Source: Zygnema circumcarinatum SAG 698-1b
Lineage: Eukaryota; Plantae; Zygnematophyceae
DNA length: 64,000 bases
Assembly (NCBI GenBank): GCA_037447605.1
Contig: CM074818.1
Span: 62,001 to 126,000, forward strand
Direction of reading: 5' to 3'
A model generated the notes under the pieces. It made no database searches. It saw only the letters and a program-made list of their open reading frames with translations, and had not been told where the DNA came from. How positions within the stretch are numbered: position 1 is the first letter of the stretch; the number at the start of each line of letters is the position of its first letter. Made by a program: the position numbers and the translations under genes. Shown here piece by piece: positions 344-56,001 of the stretch.

Positions 344-1350
344 GACTGAAACCCTACAAACCCTAAAATGGCTCCTGCAACCCTGACAAAAGCGCCGACC
401 CTCAAAAGTTCCTGACCTTACAATGACAGGAGCATGAGCCGTGCTTTTGGACAGTCCAAAAAAAGGAAGAAGGAACGGGAAGCGAAGCGTGGCCTACCCG
501 GCAGCCATGAAACTCTAAAAACCCTAAAAACCCGCGAGGGCGCTCCTGCGCTCTTTTGAAAGGAAAGGGGTCGAGGCGGCCATGGACAGGAAGGGAGGGA
601 GGGGGGAAGGGTGCCACGAAGCTTCCTCGAACTTGCGGATAAGGATGCATACAGTTCGTCAGACACGACAAAAAAAGTACCGCTCGTGTGAAATGTTGTC
701 GTCACAAATGAAGTGTTTCGTCATTGCTGATGTCATCGGTGTGACGTGGCTGTTGTGTTAGCGCACGTCATGCGGCGTAAAACGGAGACATGGAACAGCG
801 TCGCTGGAAGGCATACGAAGGGCGATAAGGCGACGACGATATGATGGCAGTGGGGCTTTGGCAGTGGCGATTTCGAGGGAAAAATGCTGAATTTAGGTCA
901 TTGTGTTTGTTGTTAGTCGCAAAAAAGTTTCATAACTAAATCAAGGTTTAAGTTGAGCTTTGAGTGGAGATAAAACACCAATCATAATAAGAAATAAAGT
1001 GACAGATGGCAAAGACCAGCGCTCAGTCAGTCAGTGAAAACCCCATCAACCTGTTTGTTGAGGAGGAGAAGTTGTGTCACGACATGGAAGAAATTATTTG
1101 CTGGAGAAAGGGGTGTCTCCCATATCAAACTCTCTCGGGGCTTCGCCATCTGAGCTACGATAACTCCTACAGGACACTCCCTCTCCCTTTTCCCCTCCCG
1201 CTGCCTCTCCCGCTCCCGCTCCCCTCCCTTATCCGCCCCCACTCACTCTCTCTGCTCAAACGGCCTATCGTACAAGTCCTTCACGACCCATGACTATCTA
1301 CTCAGCGCATCCCAGCAACCAGTGAGGTGACTTCTTATTTCATTCAGTAC

Positions 1351-11578: not shown

Positions 11579-14134
11579 CTACCTGCCGATTCCTGACTTG
11601 AAACATCGCACCGTGCGAGACAGGCGGCCATCCCAACTGTCATAAAAATCAATGATGTTTAGGTGCTGTTCAAAATTTCTTGCAGTCGTTTGCCTGAGGA
11701 AATCCCCTTTGAGCAAACCTACTTTCCTACGGTCAAAACTATTTTCTTGCGGTTTAATCAAGAAACGCGTGCGTTATGGCTTTTATGTATCATAAATGGA
11801 TCCTATACCACGTGAGAATACTCATAGACCCGTGAGCATGCATGGGGTTAGCGGGCAAGCAACCTTTGCAAAGCACTGTACACCGTCTCAGATTATTAAT
11901 AGAATAGAACCAGATGAACATTTTACTATGTTTACATATTTTATACCCGAATATCCCTGATTAAGGACGTGAACCATAACTACACCGAATCCGGTGTGCA
12001 TGTGAGCGCGATTTCCACGATTCGAATATATCGGCATATCGAAAGCGACGGCGTGCCCGTGACTTAGACGTGCGTCTACCCTCCGCAAGTCTCCTGCGGC
12101 TTATTCCTCAAGAGTGCCGTCCCTCCCTCCCTCCCTCACCCCCCCTCCTCCCGCGTTGCTTCATCTCTGCCTCTCTCTCTCTCACAGACACACGTCATCT
12201 CCGTTCTGTCCCGCCTCTCCCCTCTCTCCTGCCTCCACCCTTTCCATTCCTTTCTCCTTCCCTTCTCGTCCTCCTCCCGCCTCCCGCCTCCTCCCTAACA
12301 CTTTCCCTCCCACCCACCCTCCCGGGACGTGACAAGTACGGCAAAACGCCAACAACTATATTAATACAAAGCGAAGGAGGTACTCCTACCGGAATATTAT
12401 ACACTCTAGACTTAATTCACACATACACAGAGAACCCCTCGTCACTACCAATGCGAGGGGACTTCGAACGGTCTTTCCAAAGGCCGAGGCCCCATTTCTT
12501 CTTGTGAGACGCCCCTTTGCGGGACTTGGCCAAACTCGCGGAGGGGACGGATGGTAGCGCGCTGTAGTGGTCGAAGGACTCTCCCGACTGTCCCTTTGCG
12601 AGGTACTTGAGCGCCACCTGGAGGACTCCGACTGGCTCGTCCTCGTCCACGAGGTTGAGAGTGGCGGAAACTAAGTCGAAAGATCGCCCTATGGCGCGCC
12701 CAATGGGGATGCGGGCCACTGCCAGGTGGCGCTCTCTGAGCGCACCCCTTCGCTTGTACACGTGGAGGTACATCTGCGTTGCATCAAGGCAGGTAGTGAG
12801 AATGCAAAGGAGACGATACTCGACAGAAGGCGTTGACGGGGACGGAGGGCGAGAGGGAGGGGACAGGGACGGAGGGACAGGGGGGAGGGAATGGAAGGGG
12901 GATGGGGAGAGGGGAAGGGGTGGCGGGTGAACACGAGAGTGAGATAGACAGAGAGGGAGAGAGAGGGAGAGAGAGAGAGTGAGAGGAGGGGGGGAGCAGT
13001 ACCTGGAGAGTCTCGGGTTGGTCTTCGAACACGGTTAAGTGCATGACTCTGTCGGAGGGCAACCTCTCTCCTCTCGCGACCACTCTCCCGCCGTTAGCTG
13101 CCGCCGGCAGCGCCTCCACCGCCTCCTCCTGCTCGCCTCCGTCCACCTCCCACACGGGCTCGCTGTCCTCCACTGCCTTACGGTCAACTGAATGCATGGA
13201 GCGGCCGTCTAACTGCAGAATGGAGACGACGGAGGCCTCCAGAGTGCCCATTTCTTCCGCGTCGGATCTGTTCCCACTTCTGCAATACAAGATATTACCC
13301 AGCATGGATAGTGAGGTGGGAGAATGGCTCTCTCTCAACTCTCCCTCTCTCCCTCTCTCTCGCTCCCACTTACTCCCCTGCCGTTCTCTCCCTCCGTCTC
13401 TCACTCTCCCTTCCTCCCACTTCCTTCTCTCTTCCTCACTGAAACATCGGATTCATTCATTCATTTCCTTTTCCTTCCACGATTCAACTCACTCTTTTTA
13501 TTTCTTCTTAACCTCCTCTCTTCCTTCGATTACTTTCAATCTGCTCGTCGGTCAGTTTTGCTTTTGGACGAAGCGGGGCTCACCCAAGCAAGGCGGGCAT
13601 GGAGCCCTTTTTAGCAGTACCGTTTGTTAGAGACGCTCGCCGCCTCAACCTTTGTACTAACTCTGGGTTTCGATGCGCCACGATGACGACTGCTACGAAA
13701 AGCAGCGCCATTCTTGCAATGTGGGGCCTTTAATATATAAACTAAAATAATTATATATTTAATATATTCAATAAGTCCTTCAGTAATCCCCAAGGGAAAG
13801 GAAATAAACGAGCACGTGGGTCAGCCAGCAGTGAGAACTGTGTTCAACAATAATTTAAAGAGGACCTGCACACGCCTTTTATGCTTTCTCTCATTTTTCC
13901 TACCGCTGCCATCTGTTTCCTTCCTTCAGCCTCACACTCTACTCGCTCTCCCTTTCTTCCCCCTCTCCCACTTCCTTCCCCTCTCCCTCCCTCTCCCTCT
14001 CCGTCTTTCCCTCTCTCCCTCTCTCCCTCTCCCTCCTCTCCCTCTCCCTCTCCAGCTTTCTCCCTCTCCCTCTCCTTCTCGCCAGCTCTCCCTCCCCCCG
14101 ACGCGGTGACGGCCACGGCGGCAGCGTCGCACAT
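11579..14134 (-). CDS. Putative C2-domain-like protein; ends of gene model uncertain
   Basis: Phase-compatible exons ~13620-13690, ~13000-13285, ~12450-12773 and ~11985-12095 give MGTLEASVVSI...HLTVFEDQPETLQ|MYLHVYKRRGALRERHLAVARIPIG...VGVLQVALKY, a beta-sandwich C2-like pattern. Confidence 0.45.
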
Positions 14135-14321: not shown

Positions 14322-15003
14322 GAACTGACGCGATCTATGACGTATTTTCTCTGAGCGTACAGAACACGGGAAAACACGGAACCCCGTAATGGTGGAGAAA
14401 CTGAACGGGTTCACGCGAAACTGCCTCCATGGAGAGCGGTGGCCGGAAGGTCCGTAGCGGGAAACCACGCGGGTCCTCGGAAGGGCTGTGAAGGGGCCGT
14501 GAGGGGCGACAGCATGACACGGTGCACGCACACGCCATATTCGTTCAGAGCATGGGCGAGTTCGGCGTGGCTTTCTTACGAAGTGCTCTATGGGCATAAT
14601 TAAGGAAATAACAAACGAGAAGAGCGGATTGCTGGAGCCTACCTCCATGTCCTACCTGCCCTGCCCTGCCTACACTACCACCGTACCGGGCTGCCCGCAG
14701 GGCCCCTTCGTCCCTTTGCGAGGAGGCCTCTGGCGAGCGTCCATCTTCTGCTGCCGCCTGGCAGCGCCGCCTTTACAGAACCTGCTTGCGAATAGCTGCC
14801 GTGCCAAACCTACCTCCTAATCAAAAGCTATTCGATTGCCAACGCGTGGCTTGCGTTGACGGAACTGAGAGCAGAGACAAGGAAAAGAGGAACAGTGGGG
14901 CGCGTGTGACCTTCGGAGCGACCAGGAGACAGACAATGGAGCGGAGGGGAAAGGTGGGGATTATGTCGAGTGAGCGGGGGGAAGTGCTCTGAGGTTGTGG
15001 GGG

Positions 15004-18000
15004 TTAGGGGCTCAGCAGCTTCTTCTCTGCGGCGAGGCGGAGAATTTCCTGGAGCTTGCTTGTGTTCAGCGGCTTCGGTATGTAGGCGTCCATGCCCGCG
15101 GCGATGCACTTTTGGCCGTCTCCCATCATCGCGTGCGCTGTCATCTGCATGGCATGGACACATGGTATGCTGACGTCACTCTCATTGATTCCTCTAGCTT
15201 ACATGCCTAAGGTTACGCTCGTTTGTTAACCACGCTAGCTTGTTTGACTAAACTGAGAATCTAGTCAGAATGTGCTAGGATTGGAGGTGAAGTTGTATGC
15301 CCACAAAGCACACCAACTGACTGAGTTGTGAACAAAGGGGCCTTACAGCGACAATAGGCGTTCTCCTCCCCTCTGCCGCCTCCCGCTCACGAATTTTCAG
15401 AGTTGCTTCGAGACCGTCCATGACGGGCATTTGCACCTGCACCCCGCAACATTGCATGAGGTCTCCAGCGGCAACGCAAATGCTAGATGGGTTGGCTATC
15501 TACCTGCCACTGCTGGAAAAGAAGGTAAACGAAGTTTTTACAGAGCATGGACTGCAAGCTCACAGGCAAGACATCTGTCTATATATCAGCTTCAAGATAA
15601 ATTTGCGAAGACAAGTGGATCAGACACTAAGATGAAGGCAAAGGTAGAGGGAGGAGCGAGAGGGAAAAGTGATGCGCAAGTGATCAGATGAAATGGAATG
15701 CGACTTCAATCAAACAAAGTGAAGACATATATGTGTAACCGCTATTGGTTAGGGAGAGCTTACATCCATGAGAATGAGGTCGAAGCTCTCCAGTCCATGC
15801 TTCTCTACTGCCTCCGCCCCTGTGGAGGCGAGCACTGTGGAGTGCCCCCACTTGTGCAGCAGCGTTAGGGCCACACGCTGGTTGATCACGTTGTCCTCCG
15901 CCACAAGGATGCGCAGCGTTCGGCACTTCTTCCCGACCTGGGGCAGCGGCGACACGTTCTGCGTCTGCCACACAGGAGGGAGAAAGATATGCAGAGTAGT
16001 AACATGTTCAGAACATGGGGCAAAGCTGACTGATAAAAAGTGGTGCACAAACCTTTTAGCACATTCTGGAGGAATGAAATACCAAGAGAGGCAAGGAAGC
16101 GGGGATGAGGGTACAAGAAGACGATGGAAAGCCCGGCTCACCTCCGTGGCGTCACCCAGCTGCAGCGCTAGGCGCACAGCTCGAAGCAAAAGCAGCCGCT
16201 TGACCGGCTTCTGTACGAACACATCCACTCCCAGCTCCTCTGTTCTGCTTTGCCAACCCATCAACCCACAATAATACCCACCTCCAACATTAGCTTCCCC
16301 CTAACCTGGCCGGATCATCGTCACCAGCTAGCTACGGCAGGAGTAGAGGTTGTGATTTCATTCAAGAGCAGCAGCTACTCGAGCACAGCCACTCGAACAG
16401 TCGATCAGCCATGACAGTTATCCCATACGCAATGGCGAAACTAGACAATGTGTACATTCGCGTGTACTAACTTTCGTTAAGTTAGACAAACATCAGCTGT
16501 ACGGTCATTCGTACAACCGATTGAGGCGGCCGTTGACCACGTAAGACCGTCCAATCCAGCCGTAGGACCGTACGGCTGCCCGGCCATTCTAAAAGCGTTT
16601 TATAAAACGGCTTGACTTGTAGAATTTTACACTGCGTTCTAATTGTCATCCCTAGTTAGGAGTGAAGAATCCTGCCTGTTTAAACAGACGGATTTGCATC
16701 TAAGCGCTACCGCCTGCCACTTCGCTCTATCCAATCCCAAAAATGTGCCTTCCGTCGGAGCGTGTCTTACACCGTGGTGCAAATTAGTTCATTTTACGCA
16801 ACCAGTCCACGTGGCGGTCCAGCAATTCCAGTCGAAACGTGACTGTAACATGTGAACTGATGCACGGAGTTCAAATGTTCGACAGAAACGAGCTCTACAT
16901 CTGTATGGAAAGAGACGTCAGCAACTGGCTGACGGCATGACTTAGACCCTGTCTAATCCCAATCGTATAGGGTAAGCGATATCATGAGCATTGTTTGATT
17001 GGAAAACACCAAGCACTATTTATGTCACTTTCCTGCTCCTTCAAACGAATCACTGATCTAAATCTCTGCCAGAATGAATTTCTTGTCCGAATGTCCACCA
17101 CCTGCCCAGAACTGGAATCCATAACTGTTGCTTGTAGTTTTTTTTTTCTCCGAGCCCAAAGTAGTCAGACATTTGGCCCTCACCTGATGCCATCAGAAGG
17201 AGCAGCTGACGTCAGCAGCAGCACCGGTAACGACCAGCCCGGCTCCAATGGACGGTCTGCAGTCGCAAGCGATTGGTTTCTGCTCCTTAGCCTCATCTCC
17301 TCCTGCTCCTCCTCTCCCTCCCCAATGCTCCCTACTCTCCGCCGAAACTGCGCCTTCTCTGATTCAGGTGAAGGAGGGCAGGGGGGCGGTAAGGGCACAG
17401 CTGAAGTTGACGGATTCCCTGTGCTCCTATGAAACCTGCTGTTGGTAGCGCCACCCGACAGGTGGGTCTGCGCCTGCCCAATGTTGCCCATGTCTCTGAA
17501 CTTGGAAGGGAGCTCAAGTTCTACTTCCGTCACTGGCAATTCTATCATATCTAGCCCTCCTCCGTCCTCCGTAAGCACTTTCTGCTTCCCCGCATTTGGA
17601 TTACTGCGAGTGCGCTTGAGAAGGCGGGGCCGCTGTTGTAATAACTTCAATAATTCAGCACACCCCAGATTATTCGGACCTTCCGTTGGAAGATGCAAGT
17701 CTAGTAGCATCAGCTGGAAAGGCTGCCCTTCATTGGCAGCAAATTCAAGCTTCTTAACTGCTTCACGCCCGCTTTCTGCCTCCTCCGGCTTCAGCCCCCA
17801 TCTCTGCATGCTCCATCCCCACAGAACATCTTATAGTCTGACCTGCAATGCAGTGTTTTTTTGAGTCCATGAAAGGGTACAAGCCAACAACACCAATCCA
17901 TCTCCAGCAAACCCAAACGTAAAGGTCAAACTAGGACGGTTTCCTTACTGCGGCTAACTCGTACACAAACTTCATTTCTGCAGATTAGGCTTTCCCTTTT

Positions 18001-21000
18001 CGACCATCTAAACAATCCCTGGGTTCCGAAAACACAGCTACCGTAACAGCGAGTAGACGATAGACAAAAGCACACCTGCAGAAGGTCCCGAACGGAAGAC
18101 CTGCCAGCTGCACTTGCGTCGACTATAAGCGCTCTCACATCGCGGAGAGAAGCCATGAGAGAAGGGGCCAAGATGCCCTTGGGAGAGGGCTGGATGGGAG
18201 GGAGCATGAGCTCCGCCGTGAAGGAGAAGGTGGACCCCCTCCCCTCGTCAGAGTCCACCCACATGCGGCCCCCCATGGCGTTGGCCAGCTTGGAGGATAT
18301 GACTAAACCCAACCCTGTGAAAACAGACAAACATGACCAAGTTGTCATATGATAGTGGCTAACAATGTGTTTTGTTCAAGTTCAGACAGATCCCATCAGT
18401 CTGCTTTTGGCAATGGATACGATTACTGTCAGAGGAATAGTCGTTCTCGTCCTCTTTTTTTTCCCTGTTAGCTTTCACCTACACTTCGTCGCATCAAACC
18501 TTGCTGCTGAATTTAGGGAGCGGGAAATCAAGCACTAGAAGTCGCGGCATCTTTTCAAAGAGGTTCAATATAGCCCTTGTTAGAGCGTTCCGGGTTGAGT
18601 TCGTACCTGTGCCCCCATAGACCCTGCACCTCCCACCCTGCCCGCTATTACACGGAATACTAGATGGCCAGCATATCCTTCAAACAAGTGCTATCAAAGG
18701 TTTCATGGGTTCTGGAAAACACGTTCACAACTTAATCGTAGAAAGGAAACAGAGGGTGCATAACTAAAACGCAAGAAAACGCAATGATGTACCTTGCCTG
18801 ATGCAACTTCAAGCAGCTAGAGGAATTGCTCAAAAAATGGTCCATGCTACATGGAAACAAGTAGCAGTTTCCGCAAGAGAGAGAAAGAGGGCTCCCAAAG
18901 AAAGGCTTACAGTGACTGTGGCAAGGAGATGTCATCTCCTAGAGGCGCTAAGCTAAAAACACGATGAACCCCACTGCCAAGCATACTGAAACACACTATA
19001 CAAGTTCGAGCACTCAATGAAAGGCAAGCACAGTCTCCATGATGGGAGACAATGTCAGATGTAGTCATACCGCGTGGTTGACAAGTCCACCTGCGAGAAT
19101 GCTTGAAACAGGAGAGACTGCTTGCTCTTCGGAATGCCAATGCCTGCAAGACCTCTCCATTCCCACCTCGTCCCATAAGGAATGAAACTCTTATGAAACC
19201 TTCTGTAATCACAAACGTGTAACTCTGCTAATCTGAGATCCATAAAGCCATCAGTCAACGTCTTGATGCACACAGACAGAGATAAGCGCCCCATGGAAGG
19301 GCAAGCTTGAGCCTTCTCTATTCATGCGGGGCTGTTGGGCTGTACCTGTATCGACCACAGAGAAGAGAAGCTCCAAACTTCCCGGTCGGACCTCTCCATT
19401 CACAGATGCTTCCAGCACCACCTGACCCTTCTCTGTGAATTTGATGCTGTTCCCTGACGAAGAACACGAGGAAAAGAGCGCGCTGTTGGTCTCACACCAC
19501 AAGCCTTCAGCTTGTATACCGTTCAGACCGACCAGGAATATTAAGTTTTTCGAACTCCCGCAATCAGGAAGGAAGATGAGCTACCGGCTGCCCTAAAGTT
19601 TATGTCTCTCGCACATGGTTTGCCCCACCTTAGAGGAGGACACATGTGCAACAGACCTCTTCATGGGTGCGTACCGATGAGGTTGATGAAGATTTGGAAG
19701 AGCCGTCCTGGGTCGCCCACCAACACTTCAGGAATGTCGTCCGATGCGCGGCAGACGAGCTCTAAACCCTTTTTGTGAGCGCGAGCTGCAAGAACAGAGA
19801 TGGCATGCTCCATCTGCACAGCTCCGTGCTCATAATGAGCACGAAAGAGAAGGAAAGGCGACGATGATGGTTTGCTCCACACTTCTGGGTTGGCCTTAGA
19901 CTGCGGCTTTGGTACAGTTGCTTTGATAGCAGAGCAACTGCTGCGATTCGTCTCCTGTCTGATGAGTATGGTATGATTGGAAGAGCACGGAGGCAGAGGC
20001 AGTTACCTGGTCATGCAGCGAGAACTCAATGCTCTCCATGTTCAGCTTGCCCGCCTCAATCTTGCTGAAGTCCAAGATGTCAGTGATGAGTCGCAGCAGA
20101 TGCTTGGCTGAAAACAGAGACTGTCCACCCTCCCTCCCCACCCAGCAGAGCCGCAATTCAAATGAGAGCCAACGAACAGGACCCGATTGGCATCTAATGC
20201 AAACACGAAAACAGACTCCAAGTTCCATGAAAGTGGAAAGTTTCACCTACAAGTTCAAGATATTCCTGCTGTTCGGGAGTGGTGACTGTGTCGAGACAAA
20301 GCTCCGTGCAGTTTATGACTCCGTTCAATGGTGTGCGGATTTCATGGCTCATGTTGGCCAGCCATTCGGACTTCATGCGGTCGGCTGCAACCGCTGCGCT
20401 TCTTGCTACCTCCAGGTCTGCCTCCATCTTCTTCCTCTCCTGCACCTCCGTCGCCAAAACTTCATTTGCGCGGGCAAGCTCGCGGGTGCGTTCAAACACC
20501 TGCTCACATGTGAGAGAGGGGAGGGGAGAAATGTTTTAACGCGGAGGGAGGGGTGACGGTTGGAGAGGGGAGCAAGGAATGGTGTTGACTGCGCTTGTCG
20601 ACAGGTCTCACAAATGGGGTCAAAGCCCCATATCCCGGCATAGCAAGCACATTGAAAGATTCAGATATCTTTTCTAGTCTTGGATCTGAGCTGCCGATAA
20701 CATGTGTTAAGTGAAGCACAGGGCATGAATTATCTACCCTCTGCAACGATTTGATAGGCTGTTTGGGGAAGGAGAGGAGGAGCAGGGGAGTTGAGACCCC
20801 AGAGGGAAAGCCAAGAGCGACAGGAAAAACAACCACGAAATCTTACACAGTAAACAAAACAATCTTTTGATATGATGAACAAGCTTGTGAGCCCAACCTT
20901 AGCCTCCAACGTGATGTATGCCGCGGACAACTGGTCCGCCATGGAATTGAACGTGTGCCGGAGAGAATCGATCTCGTCCTCCCATACACGATGCCGCCGA

Positions 21001-24000
21001 TTTCGAGGAGCCGCCATGTCCCCTCTTGCCAGAGCCGCCGCAATCTTTCCAAGCTCTACAATCGGTGCAGTAAATACCTGCAGTGTTCCTAGCCTTCCAG
21101 ATGAATGGAATTCATACATACATGCTTGCACATGCATACAGACATAGATAGCTACCTTGGTAGCAGAGTGCAAATATACAGATACGCTTGCATACTTTTC
21201 GAGCGTCTGCTCTTTGCCAATGCGTGCCTTTAGGGAGCACCACTGCACTTATTTTCGTAGGTTATCCAGACAATGACTTCAAGTTACACACACGTAAACT
21301 GTCCGCTGTCTCAGGCAGTCACTTTGTGAGGTAGAGCGAGTGGATATGCAGCGGATTCTCACCCGAGCTAACACCCAGGATGCCAAGAGACCCAACAGCA
21401 GGACGCACACGATGGCGATCACAATCACAGTCTGCAGCTGATTCACAGGTCGGTACGCTTCCGCCCTGTCCTCTTGAGCCGATAGACCTGCAAGTACAGA
21501 GCCGCATCAGAACCCGACCAATGCAGTTCGCTAGCATGCCCCTTCACGAACAGACACTTAAAACAAAGTTTTGAGCCTTGCAAGCTGAAATTGCCGCACA
21601 GCGTCTCACCCCAATTGAGGTAGCCCACAGGGGTGTATGCAGCTGCCACCCATACTCCTCGGTAGTCTCTGGCCACAGTGAATCCCGTCTGATTCTGCAC
21701 AGCGAGAGAGACTGCTCCTTCGGGGTCCGGTCTTGCTGTACTTGAACTGAGGCCGGGGGGCAGCAGGAAGCGGTAGCTGTCAGTCTCGTTGGGAAGACTG
21801 TAGCCAATCACCACCTTGCCAGAAGAGTCCAGTCCTGCATAGATCACAGTTGCTAAATCAGAAAGATGCAATCTGTAGAACAACAGAAGCCCTACCTCCA
21901 GCTTCCGGAGGAAAAATTTACAGGGACAAGCATACATCAACCATCCAAAATTGGCTGATGTGATTTATAGCACTCTGTGCCATTCCTCCCACGTGTTTTT
22001 GCTTGCTTGTACAAAGGCAAATCACATCAGCTGATTACTCAAAATGCCTGCCAAATGAATCGCGATTAAGAAGCAGGCTTCCTGCACAATCGTCGGTCGA
22101 AGAGTTACATATGGGCCGGCAGCCTGCAGCTCCTCGCTAGGATGTGTAGTGCATATTGAAACGAGGCACAGTGAATGAAGGGAGAACGGGGCTTGAGAGG
22201 GCACCCACCCAGAGTGGAGTTAAGCAGTTGGGCAAAAAACGTGGCGTTGATGACTGACAGTATAGTGCCCACCCGCGTGCCCTGAAGGAGCAATCCCCCA
22301 GCCAATCAAGAGCAGCCATTATACAACAGTGTTGAACGTGACTAACGCCCCTCCTCACTCCTCTTGATGGAGGAAGGATTACAGCTGGAGGAGTAAGATA
22401 GAGCCAACAGAACAACGATACAAGCAGCGTTACAGCCGTTAAAGCAGGTAAGCGCGAGTCGAAGTGCTCACATTGGATAGGATAGGGCTGATGATGTCAG
22501 CCACTACACCAACTTCAGCGCCATTTAAATGCGGAACACTGAAGACTGTCTTCGTGCGACTATTCAGATCGGTACTGTTCAGGTTCGTGCTTGGAACGAT
22601 ATATGCTGGTCCTGTGCTGAACAGGATAGAGCCCTGCCCCCGTTGGATGCAACGATTAAGGCAAATTATTTCGTGGCCACCACCCACGGTACAGTCAAAA
22701 CTAGCTGCGGCAGCTTTTACCGCCATGCCAAACAAAAAGGGCACACAATCTCTCCGCAGAACACGTGTTCAGGGGAATACCCCTTCATTCCTAAGGCACA
22801 CAGAGGAAAAAGTGATAGAAACGAGTGCTTTGCCTCCCTCACTTTTGTATCCACAGCCGAGGCCTGCAGGAACTCGGGCAAGGAAAACAGGGCAGCTTTC
22901 AGATCATGTTGGCCTGCTTCCAAGTCTGCCGCGGTGAGGCTGCCAGACAGGCTGTGCTGCTGCAGCAGTCTGACCACTATCACTCGCGAAGAAATGAGAT
23001 CTGCTTTATCGCGCTCGCCGTTAATGTAATCTACCACCTGCTCATAGCAAAGGAATCGGAATCATACGAGCGTAGGAACGGTAAGCAAGAGGGAGCTTCT
23101 GAAGGAGCAATACTGAGCATCCTGAATGAGTCAGCAACCCTGACGCAGAGTAAGAAACTTAACGATGAGAAACGACTTCGCAAGCAAACACGTCAGCCCT
23201 ATCCTGAATACATGAAATGCGAATTACATCTGATCGAATTGTATCGTGAAGTTTGCTGTACTTGCAAAGGCATCCGTCAAACAAGCATTCTCCCAAATAG
23301 TTTGAATCAAAGCTTATCAAAGCTTCGTCTCACTGCTGAAGGGTGACCCTGCCAGCTGGCGAGAAGCACCAGCTGTCGGAGCTCTACCTTGACAAACCCT
23401 AATCACCCTTATCTCGGACTTTTCGCCAGCACCAGCAATCTTCTTTCAATCATCCGGGTTTGCACGGAACTGTATTAATATAGGCATTCTGTTACAAAGG
23501 GCCGTGATCACGGAATGAAGACAAGGACAGAGGAGGAGGAGGAGGAGGAGGAAAAGAAAGAGGTGGAGCAGGAGGGTGCGGAACAAGGAGGGGACAAGCG
23601 ACGAAGATGAGAGGGACCATAACAAGAAAAAATAGGCGAAAGGGAGAAGGCAAGAGGCCAAAGCAGCCGAGGAGAAATAGCGGACTCTGAAGAAGAAGAA
23701 GGAGAAGAGAAGGAAAAGAGGAAGGGCGATAGGCCTATGGTGGAGAAGAGTGCCTGCTGGGCGCGCAGGGAGGCGACGGTGGTGAGGCGCAGCTGGATGG
23801 CTCCACGCAGCTCGTTGTTGCAGCGCAGCCAGAGCACGATGGCCAGCACGCCCGAGGCTAGCAGCACCAGCGTGCTCACGAACAGCGTCAGCTTCAGCCA
23901 CAGCGACGCGCCCAGCTGCCGCATCAGCCGCACCCACCGCCGCCTCCGCCGTCCGCCACCTCCTCCTCCCTCCGCCTCCGCCTCTTCGCGCAGCACCGCT

Positions 24001-24122
24001 ACCACCTGCTCGCGCGTCTGCAACGCCTGCAGCTCCGCCTCCTGCGCTCCGTTGGCCGTGCGCCCGTCACGCTCGTCGCCATGGCCGCCGCTTCGCAGCA
24101 AATTATCGAACGCATCTCCCAT
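15004..24122 (-). CDS. Transmembrane hybrid histidine kinase: TM1 - extracellular Cache-like domain - TM2 - HAMP - HisKA - HATPase_c - REC - REC (~18 exons)
   Basis: H-box [31 protein letters not shown]-box [22 protein letters not shown]1 DTGIGIP, F-box [10 protein letters not shown]2 [54 protein letters not shown]2 [33 protein letters not shown]1 [26 protein letters not shown] and TM2 [21 protein letters not shown]. Stop TAA at 15004-15006. Confidence 0.93.
16495..16585. repeat. CCGTACGG/GTACGG-rich short element inside a histidine kinase intron
   Basis: GTACGGT at ~16499 and CCGTACGG at 16568 amid CCGT/ACGG words, resembling 5360-5570 and 46789-46902. Confidence 0.25.
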
Positions 24123-24394
24123 GGCCGCCGTTGGGTCCGCTCTGACATGCGTTTCCTGCACTGCTGCTGCCCTGGGGGAGAGGGCGAGGGAGAGTTCCGA
24201 ATTCGGTTCAGAGTGAGAGAGAGGAAGAGTGGCTGATCAGTACTCAAGGCGAGCCATGGTCTGTCTGCTGCTGCTGCTGCTGGTCCGTCAGCAGACTCTG
24301 CGAGCACCAGCAGCAGCATGCAGCGCGGCCATGGCGGCCATGGCGGGCGGGTGCAGGCAGGCAGCGAGCGGGCAGTGGCGGGCCCAGAGAGCGA

Positions 24395-24799
24395 CACGTG
24401 GCGAGTGCTGCCTCCCGGAGGAGCGAGCATCCGCTACAAGCGTGTCCCGCTGGTGCTCCATCGCGGCCGTACTGGCTGTAGCTCCGCACTTCCTCCTCGC
24501 TACAGCCCCAGCCCGTCGCGCAGCGCCTCTGGCGTGTCGGTGGCGGGCGGCTGTAGCGGAGTCTTGCACGGGCGGCCGCGTCAGGACGAGCACCGACCTG
24601 GCCCCCGCGGCGGAAAAACTGGGGAACGTACAATGTTCGTACGATGCCATCTGCGACCGTACAGCGGCGGCCACAACGGGCGGCAGAGCTGTGCCGACCC
24701 CGCCAAGTGCCACGTGGCGCTCTCTCACTGCGTGCACATGCGCGGGCCGGATGACGTGGCACGAGTGCACTAACGCGCGCAACGAGCACTTGCCACGTG
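24395..24799. promoter_or_regulatory. G-box/ABRE cluster in the divergent intergenic region between the histidine kinase and NAR1
   Basis: CACGTG at 24395, 24711, 24794 and ACGTGGC at 24754 in a ~920 bp head-to-head interval. Confidence 0.4.
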
Positions 24800-42749: not shown

Positions 42750-42774
42750 CCATGCCCATGCCCATGCTCATGCT

Positions 42775-42808
<34 letters not shown>

Positions 42809-42921
42809 CTGTCCATGCCCATGCTCATGCTCATGCCCATGGCTATGCCCATGCTGTCCATGCCCATGCTCATGCTCATGCCCATGGCTATGCCCATGCT
42901 GTCCATGCCCCTGCTCATGTT

Positions 42922-42955
<34 letters not shown>

Positions 42956-43113
42956 CTGTCCATGCCCATGCCCATGCTGTCCATGCCCATGCCCATGCTG
43001 TCCATGCCCATGCCCATGCCCATGCTGTCCATGCCCATGCCCATGCCCATGCTGTCCATGCCCATGCCCATGCCCATGCTGTCCATGCCCCTGCTCATGC
43101 TCATGCCCATGCC

Positions 43114-43186
<73 letters not shown>
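42750..43186. repeat. Compound (ATGCCC)n hexanucleotide repeat with ATGCTC, ATGGCT and ATGCTGTCC variants
   Basis: ~440 bp of CCATGC-based units, producing His-Ala, Met-Pro and Cys-Pro runs in the ORF track. Confidence 0.9.

Positions 43187-43188
<2 letters not shown>

Positions 43189-55059: not shown

Positions 55060-56001
<942 letters not shown>

Follow-up and report, generated by a model that had tools for sequence, protein, structure and literature searches.

A dCache-HAMP hybrid histidine kinase of Zygnema circumcarinatum belongs to a conserved, uncharacterised streptophyte family of bacterial type

Among the closest known systems are the osmosensor kinases AHK1 (Arabidopsis), HK1a/b (poplar) and Sln1 (yeast), hybrid histidine kinases with two transmembrane (TM) segments, an ectodomain published as dCache_1 and a relay to histidine-containing phosphotransfer (HPt) proteins. 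The dCache_1 domain was found in Sln1 by Upadhyay et al. (PMC4822843), and in 2023 Héricourt and colleagues reported a conserved dCache_1 in AHK1 and in poplar HK1a/b, with a domain scheme that contains no HAMP (PMC10093795). Cache-bearing histidine kinases have been noted in plants since 2016, and according to a published statement the Cache domains of plants are confined to histidine kinases. The text of the eukaryotic kinase survey by Kabbara et al. does not mention Cache and refers to HAMP for fungi only (PMC6324907), while Ryo et al. stated that the moss kinases absent from seed plants are still unstudied (PMC6137987). Here we analyse a kinase gene on the minus strand of a 64,000-nucleotide (nt) stretch of the genome of Zygnema circumcarinatum SAG 698-1b (GCA_037447605.1, contig CM074818.1, positions 62,001 to 126,000), referred to below as the window. 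A preliminary description, made from the letters of this stretch, had proposed a Cache-HAMP hybrid histidine kinase with two receivers and had called it unlike land-plant kinases.

We find that the gene does not represent a new kind of receptor; it adds a further algal protein to a conserved streptophyte family of bacterial type whose members are uncharacterised. Its orthologues were recovered from the Zygnematophyceae Mesotaenium, Spirogloea and Closterium, and among land plants from the lycophyte Selaginella, the mosses Physcomitrium, Sphagnum and Ceratodon, and the ferns Adiantum and Ceratopteris. The domain order of all these streptophyte relatives is identical to that of the window protein, and their sensors align with the window sensor from end to end at 33–41 % identity. 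In these relatives, among them Selaginella XP_002967448.2 (annotated as 'hybrid signal transduction protein dokA') and Physcomitrium A0A7I4AXH9, the identity is higher in the kinase core than in the ectodomain. The idea that the layout is foreign to land plants is wrong for mosses, lycophytes and ferns; it appears right for seed plants, in which our word-limited searches found no member. No functional study was found for any member of the family, and the Zygnema genome paper and two reviews contained nothing specific on it. In our reading, the protein is very probably a receptor of the hybrid histidine kinase type, seated in the plasma membrane or an endomembrane, and a member of an old streptophyte family that goes back to a bacterial-type dCache_1-HAMP kinase with two receivers and a C-terminal Hpt.

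The family was opened by a whole-library phmmer search with the 74 amino acids (aa) of exon 5, which gave 20 matches; a word-indexed search with the sensor of P0001 (1165 aa, deduced from the transcript contigs of a different alga) gave only seven proteins. After the streptophytes, the next-best matches were bacterial HAMP hybrid kinases that have a dCache_1 or CHASE8 domain and end in an Hpt; many carry the label Planctomycetota. More than 80 bacterial kinases stood among the best 120 whole-protein matches (all of at least 494 bits). Bacterial kinases with the order dCache_1-HAMP-HisKA-HATPase-REC-REC-Hpt (e.g. P0064, P0071, P0072 and P0082, mostly from metagenomes) are co-linear with the window protein from TM1 to the last receiver and share with it the motif DYRGxxVxAAYxPVGYxxWGL in the membrane-proximal module. 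The similarity to bacterial dCache-HAMP sensors noted in the preliminary description extends along the whole sensor, with 27–33 % identity over 310 aa (E 1e-35 to 1e-31). The bacterial proteins differ in having the C-terminal Hpt, a compact first receiver and, in some cases, PAS inserts, whereas the window gene is interrupted by 18 introns and encodes conserved sequons for N-glycosylation. We also recovered P0060, a protein of 765 aa from a metagenome contig of the Joint Genome Institute, which shares 62 % identity with the family member of Selaginella and probably represents plant DNA in an environmental sample.

Phylogenetic trees were calculated separately for the kinase core with receivers (61 rows) and for the sensor with HAMP (59 rows); both are unrooted and contain no AHK1, CKI1 or cytokinin-receptor sequences. 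The streptophyte proteins form one clade in both trees, each time with support 100. An embryophyte subclade is present in both (support 95 and 100). The window protein falls into a group with P0001 and the sequences from Zygnematophyceae, and two Closterium rows lie inside the streptophyte clade of the sensor tree. The Selaginella gene was mapped on its own genomic locus by exact exon mapping, and 10 of its 13 introns coincide with window introns in alignment column and phase, while an eleventh is one column off. Because the streptophytes are one clade in both trees and share intron positions, sensor and transmitter have evidently been inherited jointly, in a single nuclear gene, from a time before the split of Zygnematophyceae and land plants. 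The same clade in both trees and the 10 matching Selaginella introns show that the gene is old, of bacterial type and passed on vertically within the streptophytes.

The bacterial relatives could also suggest that the gene came from bacteria recently or is a contaminant of the assembly, as the best relatives beyond the streptophytes are bacterial and many are labelled Planctomycetota. We give this explanation practically no weight, since the 18 spliceosomal introns are removed in RNA, ten intron positions are common with Selaginella, the family tree mirrors the species tree and streptophytes conserve the INAT sequon; introns and RNA already refute it. The preliminary description had counted about 17 introns and concluded that this is a naturalised nuclear gene. 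The number is 18, but the nuclear character holds, with introns spliced in RNA and shared with Selaginella. It had further suggested that the receptor was either acquired horizontally or lost from land plants; horizontal acquisition is plausible as an ancient event only, and loss does not apply to mosses, lycophytes and ferns, which retained the family.

In streptophytes, unlike in the bacterial relatives, the Hpt was lost, the first receiver gained an insert (37–160 aa in streptophytes versus 3 aa in bacteria) and a conserved INAT sequon was acquired. A bacterial origin of the family is likely, but since the trees are unrooted the bacterial donor cannot be named. A more extended scenario can be offered only tentatively. 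In it, a bacterial, possibly Planctomycetota-like, kinase was acquired whole before the Zygnematophyceae/land-plant split, persisted as far as the ferns but disappeared from seed plants, and survives as an orphan lineage of small-molecule receptors that feeds the HPt/response-regulator relay of cytokinin, with the conserved proximal module perhaps as the ligand site.

The gene model has a coding span from 24122 to 15004 on the minus strand, with the ATG at 24122 and the stop codon ending at 15004, and comprises 19 exons, 18 introns and 1140 aa. Its limits are exactly those proposed in the preliminary description, and all peptides quoted there were found on the minus strand in stop-free pieces of the three-frame translation of 14800-24400. 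In four public runs from two studies, spliced contigs connect the exons from 23754 to 18314 of the minus strand through GT-AG sites; these contigs were taken as RNA because they are spliced. Mapping of the contigs to 18200-24190 gave 13 joints with CT..AC ends in plus-strand reading (GT-AG in the direction of the gene), which confirm 13 junctions of the 5′ part of the gene. The kinase gene is thus transcribed and spliced as read. For the junctions 3′ of 18076 we chose frame-keeping GT-AG sites and checked them against P0001, which served as reference for this part of the model; the window model is co-linear with P0001, with 71 % identity over 1110 aa. For exon 17 we placed the acceptor at 15964, the AG site that best fits P0001; position 15961 was discarded, as there is no AG. 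A search with the model by tblastn revealed no second copy of the gene within the 64-kb window.

Some details of splicing are worth mentioning. Intron 1 is of the GC-AG type, with a GC donor at 23753, and the junction 23036/23753 is present in runs X2 and X5. In run X2, exon 2 is also joined to a GT donor at 23388 within intron 1 (23038-23753), which could represent an alternative 5′ exon or a minor isoform. Several RNA contigs pass unspliced across introns 1 and 13 (18290-18624 and 23013-23782), which suggests intron retention or pre-mRNA in the libraries. The micro-exon at 18623-18607 has 17 nt and encodes VYGGT of the G2 box, in the ATP-lid, between introns of 447 and 292 nt. It was recognised from 11 extra letters at the joint 18319/19070, which are matched by loose contig ends, and from the AG/GT flanks. 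In Selaginella, the intron 3′ of the equivalent position is absent and the sequence is fused to the next exon. One loose end, at 20786, was considered as a rearrangement and rejected, since the sense transcript of exon 15 overlaps there by chance, in a purine-rich stretch. The sequence of the insert in exon 15 is also present in RNA contigs.

Regarding the protein, Pfam recognised on exon pieces HAMP (E 9e-5), HisKA (4e-13, in two pieces), HATPase_c (1e-6) and Response_reg (in four pieces). Together with the hydrophobic segments and the boxes, these matches agree with the proposed layout of TM1, ectodomain, TM2, HAMP, HisKA, HATPase and two receivers; the ectodomain measures 259 aa instead of about 270, and its loop contains the six announced N-x-S/T sequons, by which it is predicted to be glycosylatable. 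The boxes are complete, with HEIRTP (containing His495), NLIGNSIKFT, DTGIGI, FQAFSQ and GGTGLGL, and identify the protein as a hybrid histidine kinase. The C-terminal receiver has the expected residues, EDN, D1064, the T of MTAH and K1118, and the protein ends a few residues past it, lacking the C-terminal Hpt (PF01627) of the bacterial relatives. The claim of two receivers thus stands for the C-terminal one, which is canonical, and needs correction for the first, which keeps D791, Thr and Lys but has lost the second acidic residue (VDAS where relatives have VDDN) and carries a low-complexity insert of 125 aa. The algal members, the window protein included, have DA, DS or DG in place of DD, and the length of the insert varies among streptophyte members. 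With one Mg-binding acidic residue lost and a disordered insert, the first receiver is probably a regulatory or docking pseudo-receiver.

These changes could also be seen as signs of a decaying, non-signalling relic, a pseudo-kinase retained as a scaffold only. This seems highly improbable, because the frame of 1140 codons is intact over 19 exons, all catalytic boxes and both phospho-acceptors are present, spliced transcripts occur in four runs and the kinase core is 83 % identical to that of P0001.

The ectodomain was characterised on P0001, whose sensor, from TM1 to TM2, is 61 % identical to the window sensor over 310 aa. The AlphaFold2 model of P0001:91-401, calculated with the family alignment, has a mean predicted local distance difference test score (pLDDT) of 90.6 and a predicted template modelling score (pTM) of 0.84, and consists of a long helix and, after it, two alpha/beta modules. 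The top Foldseek matches of this model in the PDB are all dCache ligand-binding domains (E 7e-12 to 4e-8), namely PctA, Tlp3, TlpC, Mlp24/37, HK1S-Z and DvhD, and an embedding search agrees with the assignment. Pfam dCache_1 is matched by 38 of 40 aligned family sensors (E<=0.01); against a gathering score of 45 bits, Selaginella P0013 reaches 37.6 and the bacterial relative P0010 reaches 60. A precomputed PF02743 match is present in many plant members of the family. From the model, the Foldseek matches and the dCache_1 matches in family sensors we conclude that the ectodomain has the double-Cache fold, as the preliminary description had expected. No CHASE domain was matched by Pfam in the exon pieces; the fold and the Pfam results indicate dCache.

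The near-invariant positions are concentrated in the membrane-proximal module and in the helix entering TM2, while the INAT sequon is conserved across streptophyte members. The proximal module (21610-21834, with TGLxxxGE, LLPP and DYRGVxVxAAYxPVGYxxWGL) is conserved from bacteria to ferns, more so than the distal module, which is the usual ligand site of most dCache domains. Although the bacterial dCache sensors (PctA, Tlp3, TlpC, Mlp24/37, HK1S-Z and DvhD, 9rc2) have the same fold, with Foldseek probability 1.00 and target-normalised TM-scores of 0.35–0.75, their identity to the window family is only 11–18 % and their amino-acid motif Y..R.W...Y...D is absent here. This AA_motif of the dCache_1AA amino-acid sensors consists of Y121, R126, W128, Y144 and D173 in PctA numbering (PMC8915833). 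Ectodomain residues 96-355 contain no Y....R.W and not even R.W, so that, as far as this motif tells, the ligand is not an amino acid bound in the known manner. Gumerov et al. (2022) stated that every eukaryotic dCache_1 protein carries a VWA insertion (PMC8915833); the window family, with its uninterrupted dCache_1 and no VWA insertion, is at odds with this.

Since dCache_1 domains are published in AHK1, HK1 and Sln1, and CHASE receptors also have a receiver-like domain ahead of the true receiver, the features special to the window family are the HAMP linker and the bacterial-type co-linearity. When the kinase core was compared with the PDB by sequence, the closest entry was 7z8n (218 bits), which we take from the alignment to be a bacterial kinase of the BarA/GacS type, followed by 7p8e (191 bits), presumably the cytosolic part of a plant cytokinin receptor. 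The C-terminal receiver matched best to 8phn (134 bits), which looks like a fungal receiver of the Nik1 type, and less to AHK5 (81), Sln1 (78), AHK4 (77) and CKI1 (63). The CHASE cytokinin receptors AHK2/3/4 are therefore fairly similar in the kinase core (191 bits, 7p8e) and only weakly so in the receiver (77 bits), and they have a CHASE sensor and no HAMP where the window protein has dCache_1 and HAMP. With 78 bits to Sln1 against 134 to 8phn, the resemblance to fungal Sln1-type sensors, mentioned in the preliminary description, is by these scores architectural only.

A related proposal is that the protein is an osmosensor of the AHK1/Sln1 type, placed within the AHK1 clade or sister to it, and would sense turgor or cell-wall contact and not a diffusible ligand. 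The proteins agree in topology (TM, an ectodomain of about 260–330 aa, TM, kinase, receiver), dCache_1 in the ectodomains of AHK1, HK1a/b and Sln1 has been tied to osmosensing in yeast assays (PMC10093795, PMC4822843), and Kabbara et al. report AHK1-related kinases in a streptophyte alga (PMC6324907). However, the InterProScan scheme of AHK1, HK1 and Sln1 has no HAMP, a word that is absent from the poplar paper (PMC10093795), and none of these proteins was retrieved as a relative of the window protein. No seed-plant, AHK1, CKI1 or CHASE protein was found among the best 120 whole-protein matches or the 59 sensor-only matches, which is indirect evidence as the database searches prefilter on shared words. 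The receiver scores, including the low one for CKI1, are likewise indirect evidence and point the same way. We consider an AHK1/Sln1-type osmosensor unlikely, and nesting of the protein in the AHK1, CKI1 or CHASE clades is argued against by these indirect lines of sequence evidence.

The membrane receptor of bacterial type that we favour could work as follows. A small extracellular ligand, or a cue from the cell wall or apoplast, would alter the Cache domain, and this change would pass through TM2 and HAMP to the dimerisation and histidine phosphotransfer (DHp) helices and alter the autophosphorylation of His495. The phosphoryl group would then move from His495 to Asp1064 of the C-terminal receiver, further to separate HPt proteins and finally to response regulators. 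Separate HPt proteins are proposed because the bacterial C-terminal Hpt is missing. The domains needed for the relay from His495 over Asp1064 to free HPt proteins are contained in the protein, and the signalling steps are what we infer from them.

Several points weigh against this reading. Both trees were made by a quick method and have only support values of the Shimodaira-Hasegawa-like approximate likelihood ratio test (SH-aLRT), and owing to the word prefilter the absence of the family from seed plants, liverworts, hornworts and earlier-branching algae is unproven. The structure was predicted for the 61 %-identical sensor of P0001 and not for the window's own spliced protein, and Pfam dCache_1 (PF02743) matches neither P0001 nor the exon pieces of the window. 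The HAMP of the window scores 23.1 bits, 2 under the curated cut-off of 25; it was scored on exon 7 alone, with the first profile positions missing, and it sits directly after TM2, while in relatives HAMP is above the cut-off (25.8 to 55 bits). Finally, splice-site logic and the co-linear alignment with P0001, not reads, are the basis for the junctions 3′ of 18076, and the start codon is predicted, as no contig mapped to 24000-24190, in an N-terminus that resembles that of P0001.

Compared with flowering plants, non-seed plants and their algal sister lineages have retained additional two-component receptors, and the signal is known for almost none of these. With its clear ligand-binding fold, complete phosphorelay transmitter and orthologues in the tractable Physcomitrium, Ceratopteris and Selaginella, the family is a practical candidate for a new extracellular cue into the cytokinin relay. 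It would also be a clean case of a bacterial receptor domesticated whole, with introns and glycosylation sites acquired, the Hpt lost and the first-receiver insert gained.

Table 1. Exons of the kinase gene (window coordinates, minus strand) and segments of the encoded protein (residues).
Feature	Position	Content	Evidence
Exon 1	23754..24122 (-)	Cytosolic N-terminus, Arg-rich stretch, TM1 (23903-23826), start of sensor stalk helix; GC donor	
Exon 2	22843..23037 (-)	Stalk helix and helical part of membrane-distal Cache module	RNA junctions
Exon 3	22472..22633 (-)	Strands of distal Cache module	RNA junctions in 4/4 runs
Exon 4	22209..22281 (-)	End of distal module, with INAT sequon conserved in streptophytes	RNA, alignment
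Exon 5	21610..21834 (-)	Membrane-proximal Cache module, motif DYRGVxVxAAYxPVGYxxWG	RNA, alignment
Exon 6	21363..21487 (-)	C-terminal sensor helix and TM2 (21437-21366)	RNA
Exon 7	20898..21077 (-)	HAMP, residues 383-444	Pfam HAMP 23.1 bits, exon alone
Exon 8	20251..20499 (-)	Signalling helix, HisKA, H-box; phospho-acceptor His495 at 20346-20344	Pfam HisKA 4e-13, RNA
Exon 9	20007..20120 (-)	Second helix of HisKA	Pfam, RNA
Exon 10	19675..19813 (-)	Start of HATPase_c, first part of N box	RNA
Exon 11	19346..19453 (-)	End of N box (NSIKFT) and G1 box	RNA
Exon 12	19071..19143 (-)	F box	RNA
Exon 13	18607..18623 (-)	17-nt micro-exon, VYGGT of G2 box	RNA joint letters, AG/GT flanks
Exon 14	18076..18314 (-)	Remainder of G2 box, end of HATPase_c, start of first receiver (VDAS)	Pfam HATPase_c, RNA, P0001
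Exon 15	17184..17803 (-)	First receiver, Asp791 (17701-17699), 125-aa low-complexity insert (about 17632-17243)	216-codon open frame
Exon 16	16142..16244 (-)	End of first receiver (QKP lysine)	P0001 co-linearity, alignment
Exon 17	15764..15964 (-)	Linker and first half of C-terminal receiver, to phospho-acceptor Asp1064 (15766-15764)	Pfam Response_reg; acceptor predicted
Exon 18	15347..15436 (-)	Middle part of C-terminal receiver	Pfam, P0001
Exon 19	15004..15144 (-)	End of C-terminal receiver (Lys1118), stop codon; no Hpt	Pfam, P0001, alignment
Cytosolic N-terminus	1-73	Arg run at end	
TM1	74-99	N-in signal anchor	Hydrophobic segment
Ectodomain	100-358	259 aa, six N-x-S/T sequons	
TM2	359-382		Hydrophobic segment
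HAMP	383-444		
Signalling helix	445-483		
HisKA	484-564	H495	
HATPase_c	596-711	N, G1, F and G2 boxes	
First receiver	736-990		
Canonical receiver	1014-1133	D1064, K1118	

Outside the gene, three repeats were observed in the window. A (TCTC)n microsatellite at 55060-55998 (about 940 bp, 236 copies, 96 % matches) accounts for the extreme GC and AT skew of the 54–56 kb bin. At 42750-43187, the unit CCATGC is repeated imperfectly about 69 times, and a CT-rich imperfect tandem repeat is located at 13942-14094, about 900 bp downstream of the stop codon of the kinase.

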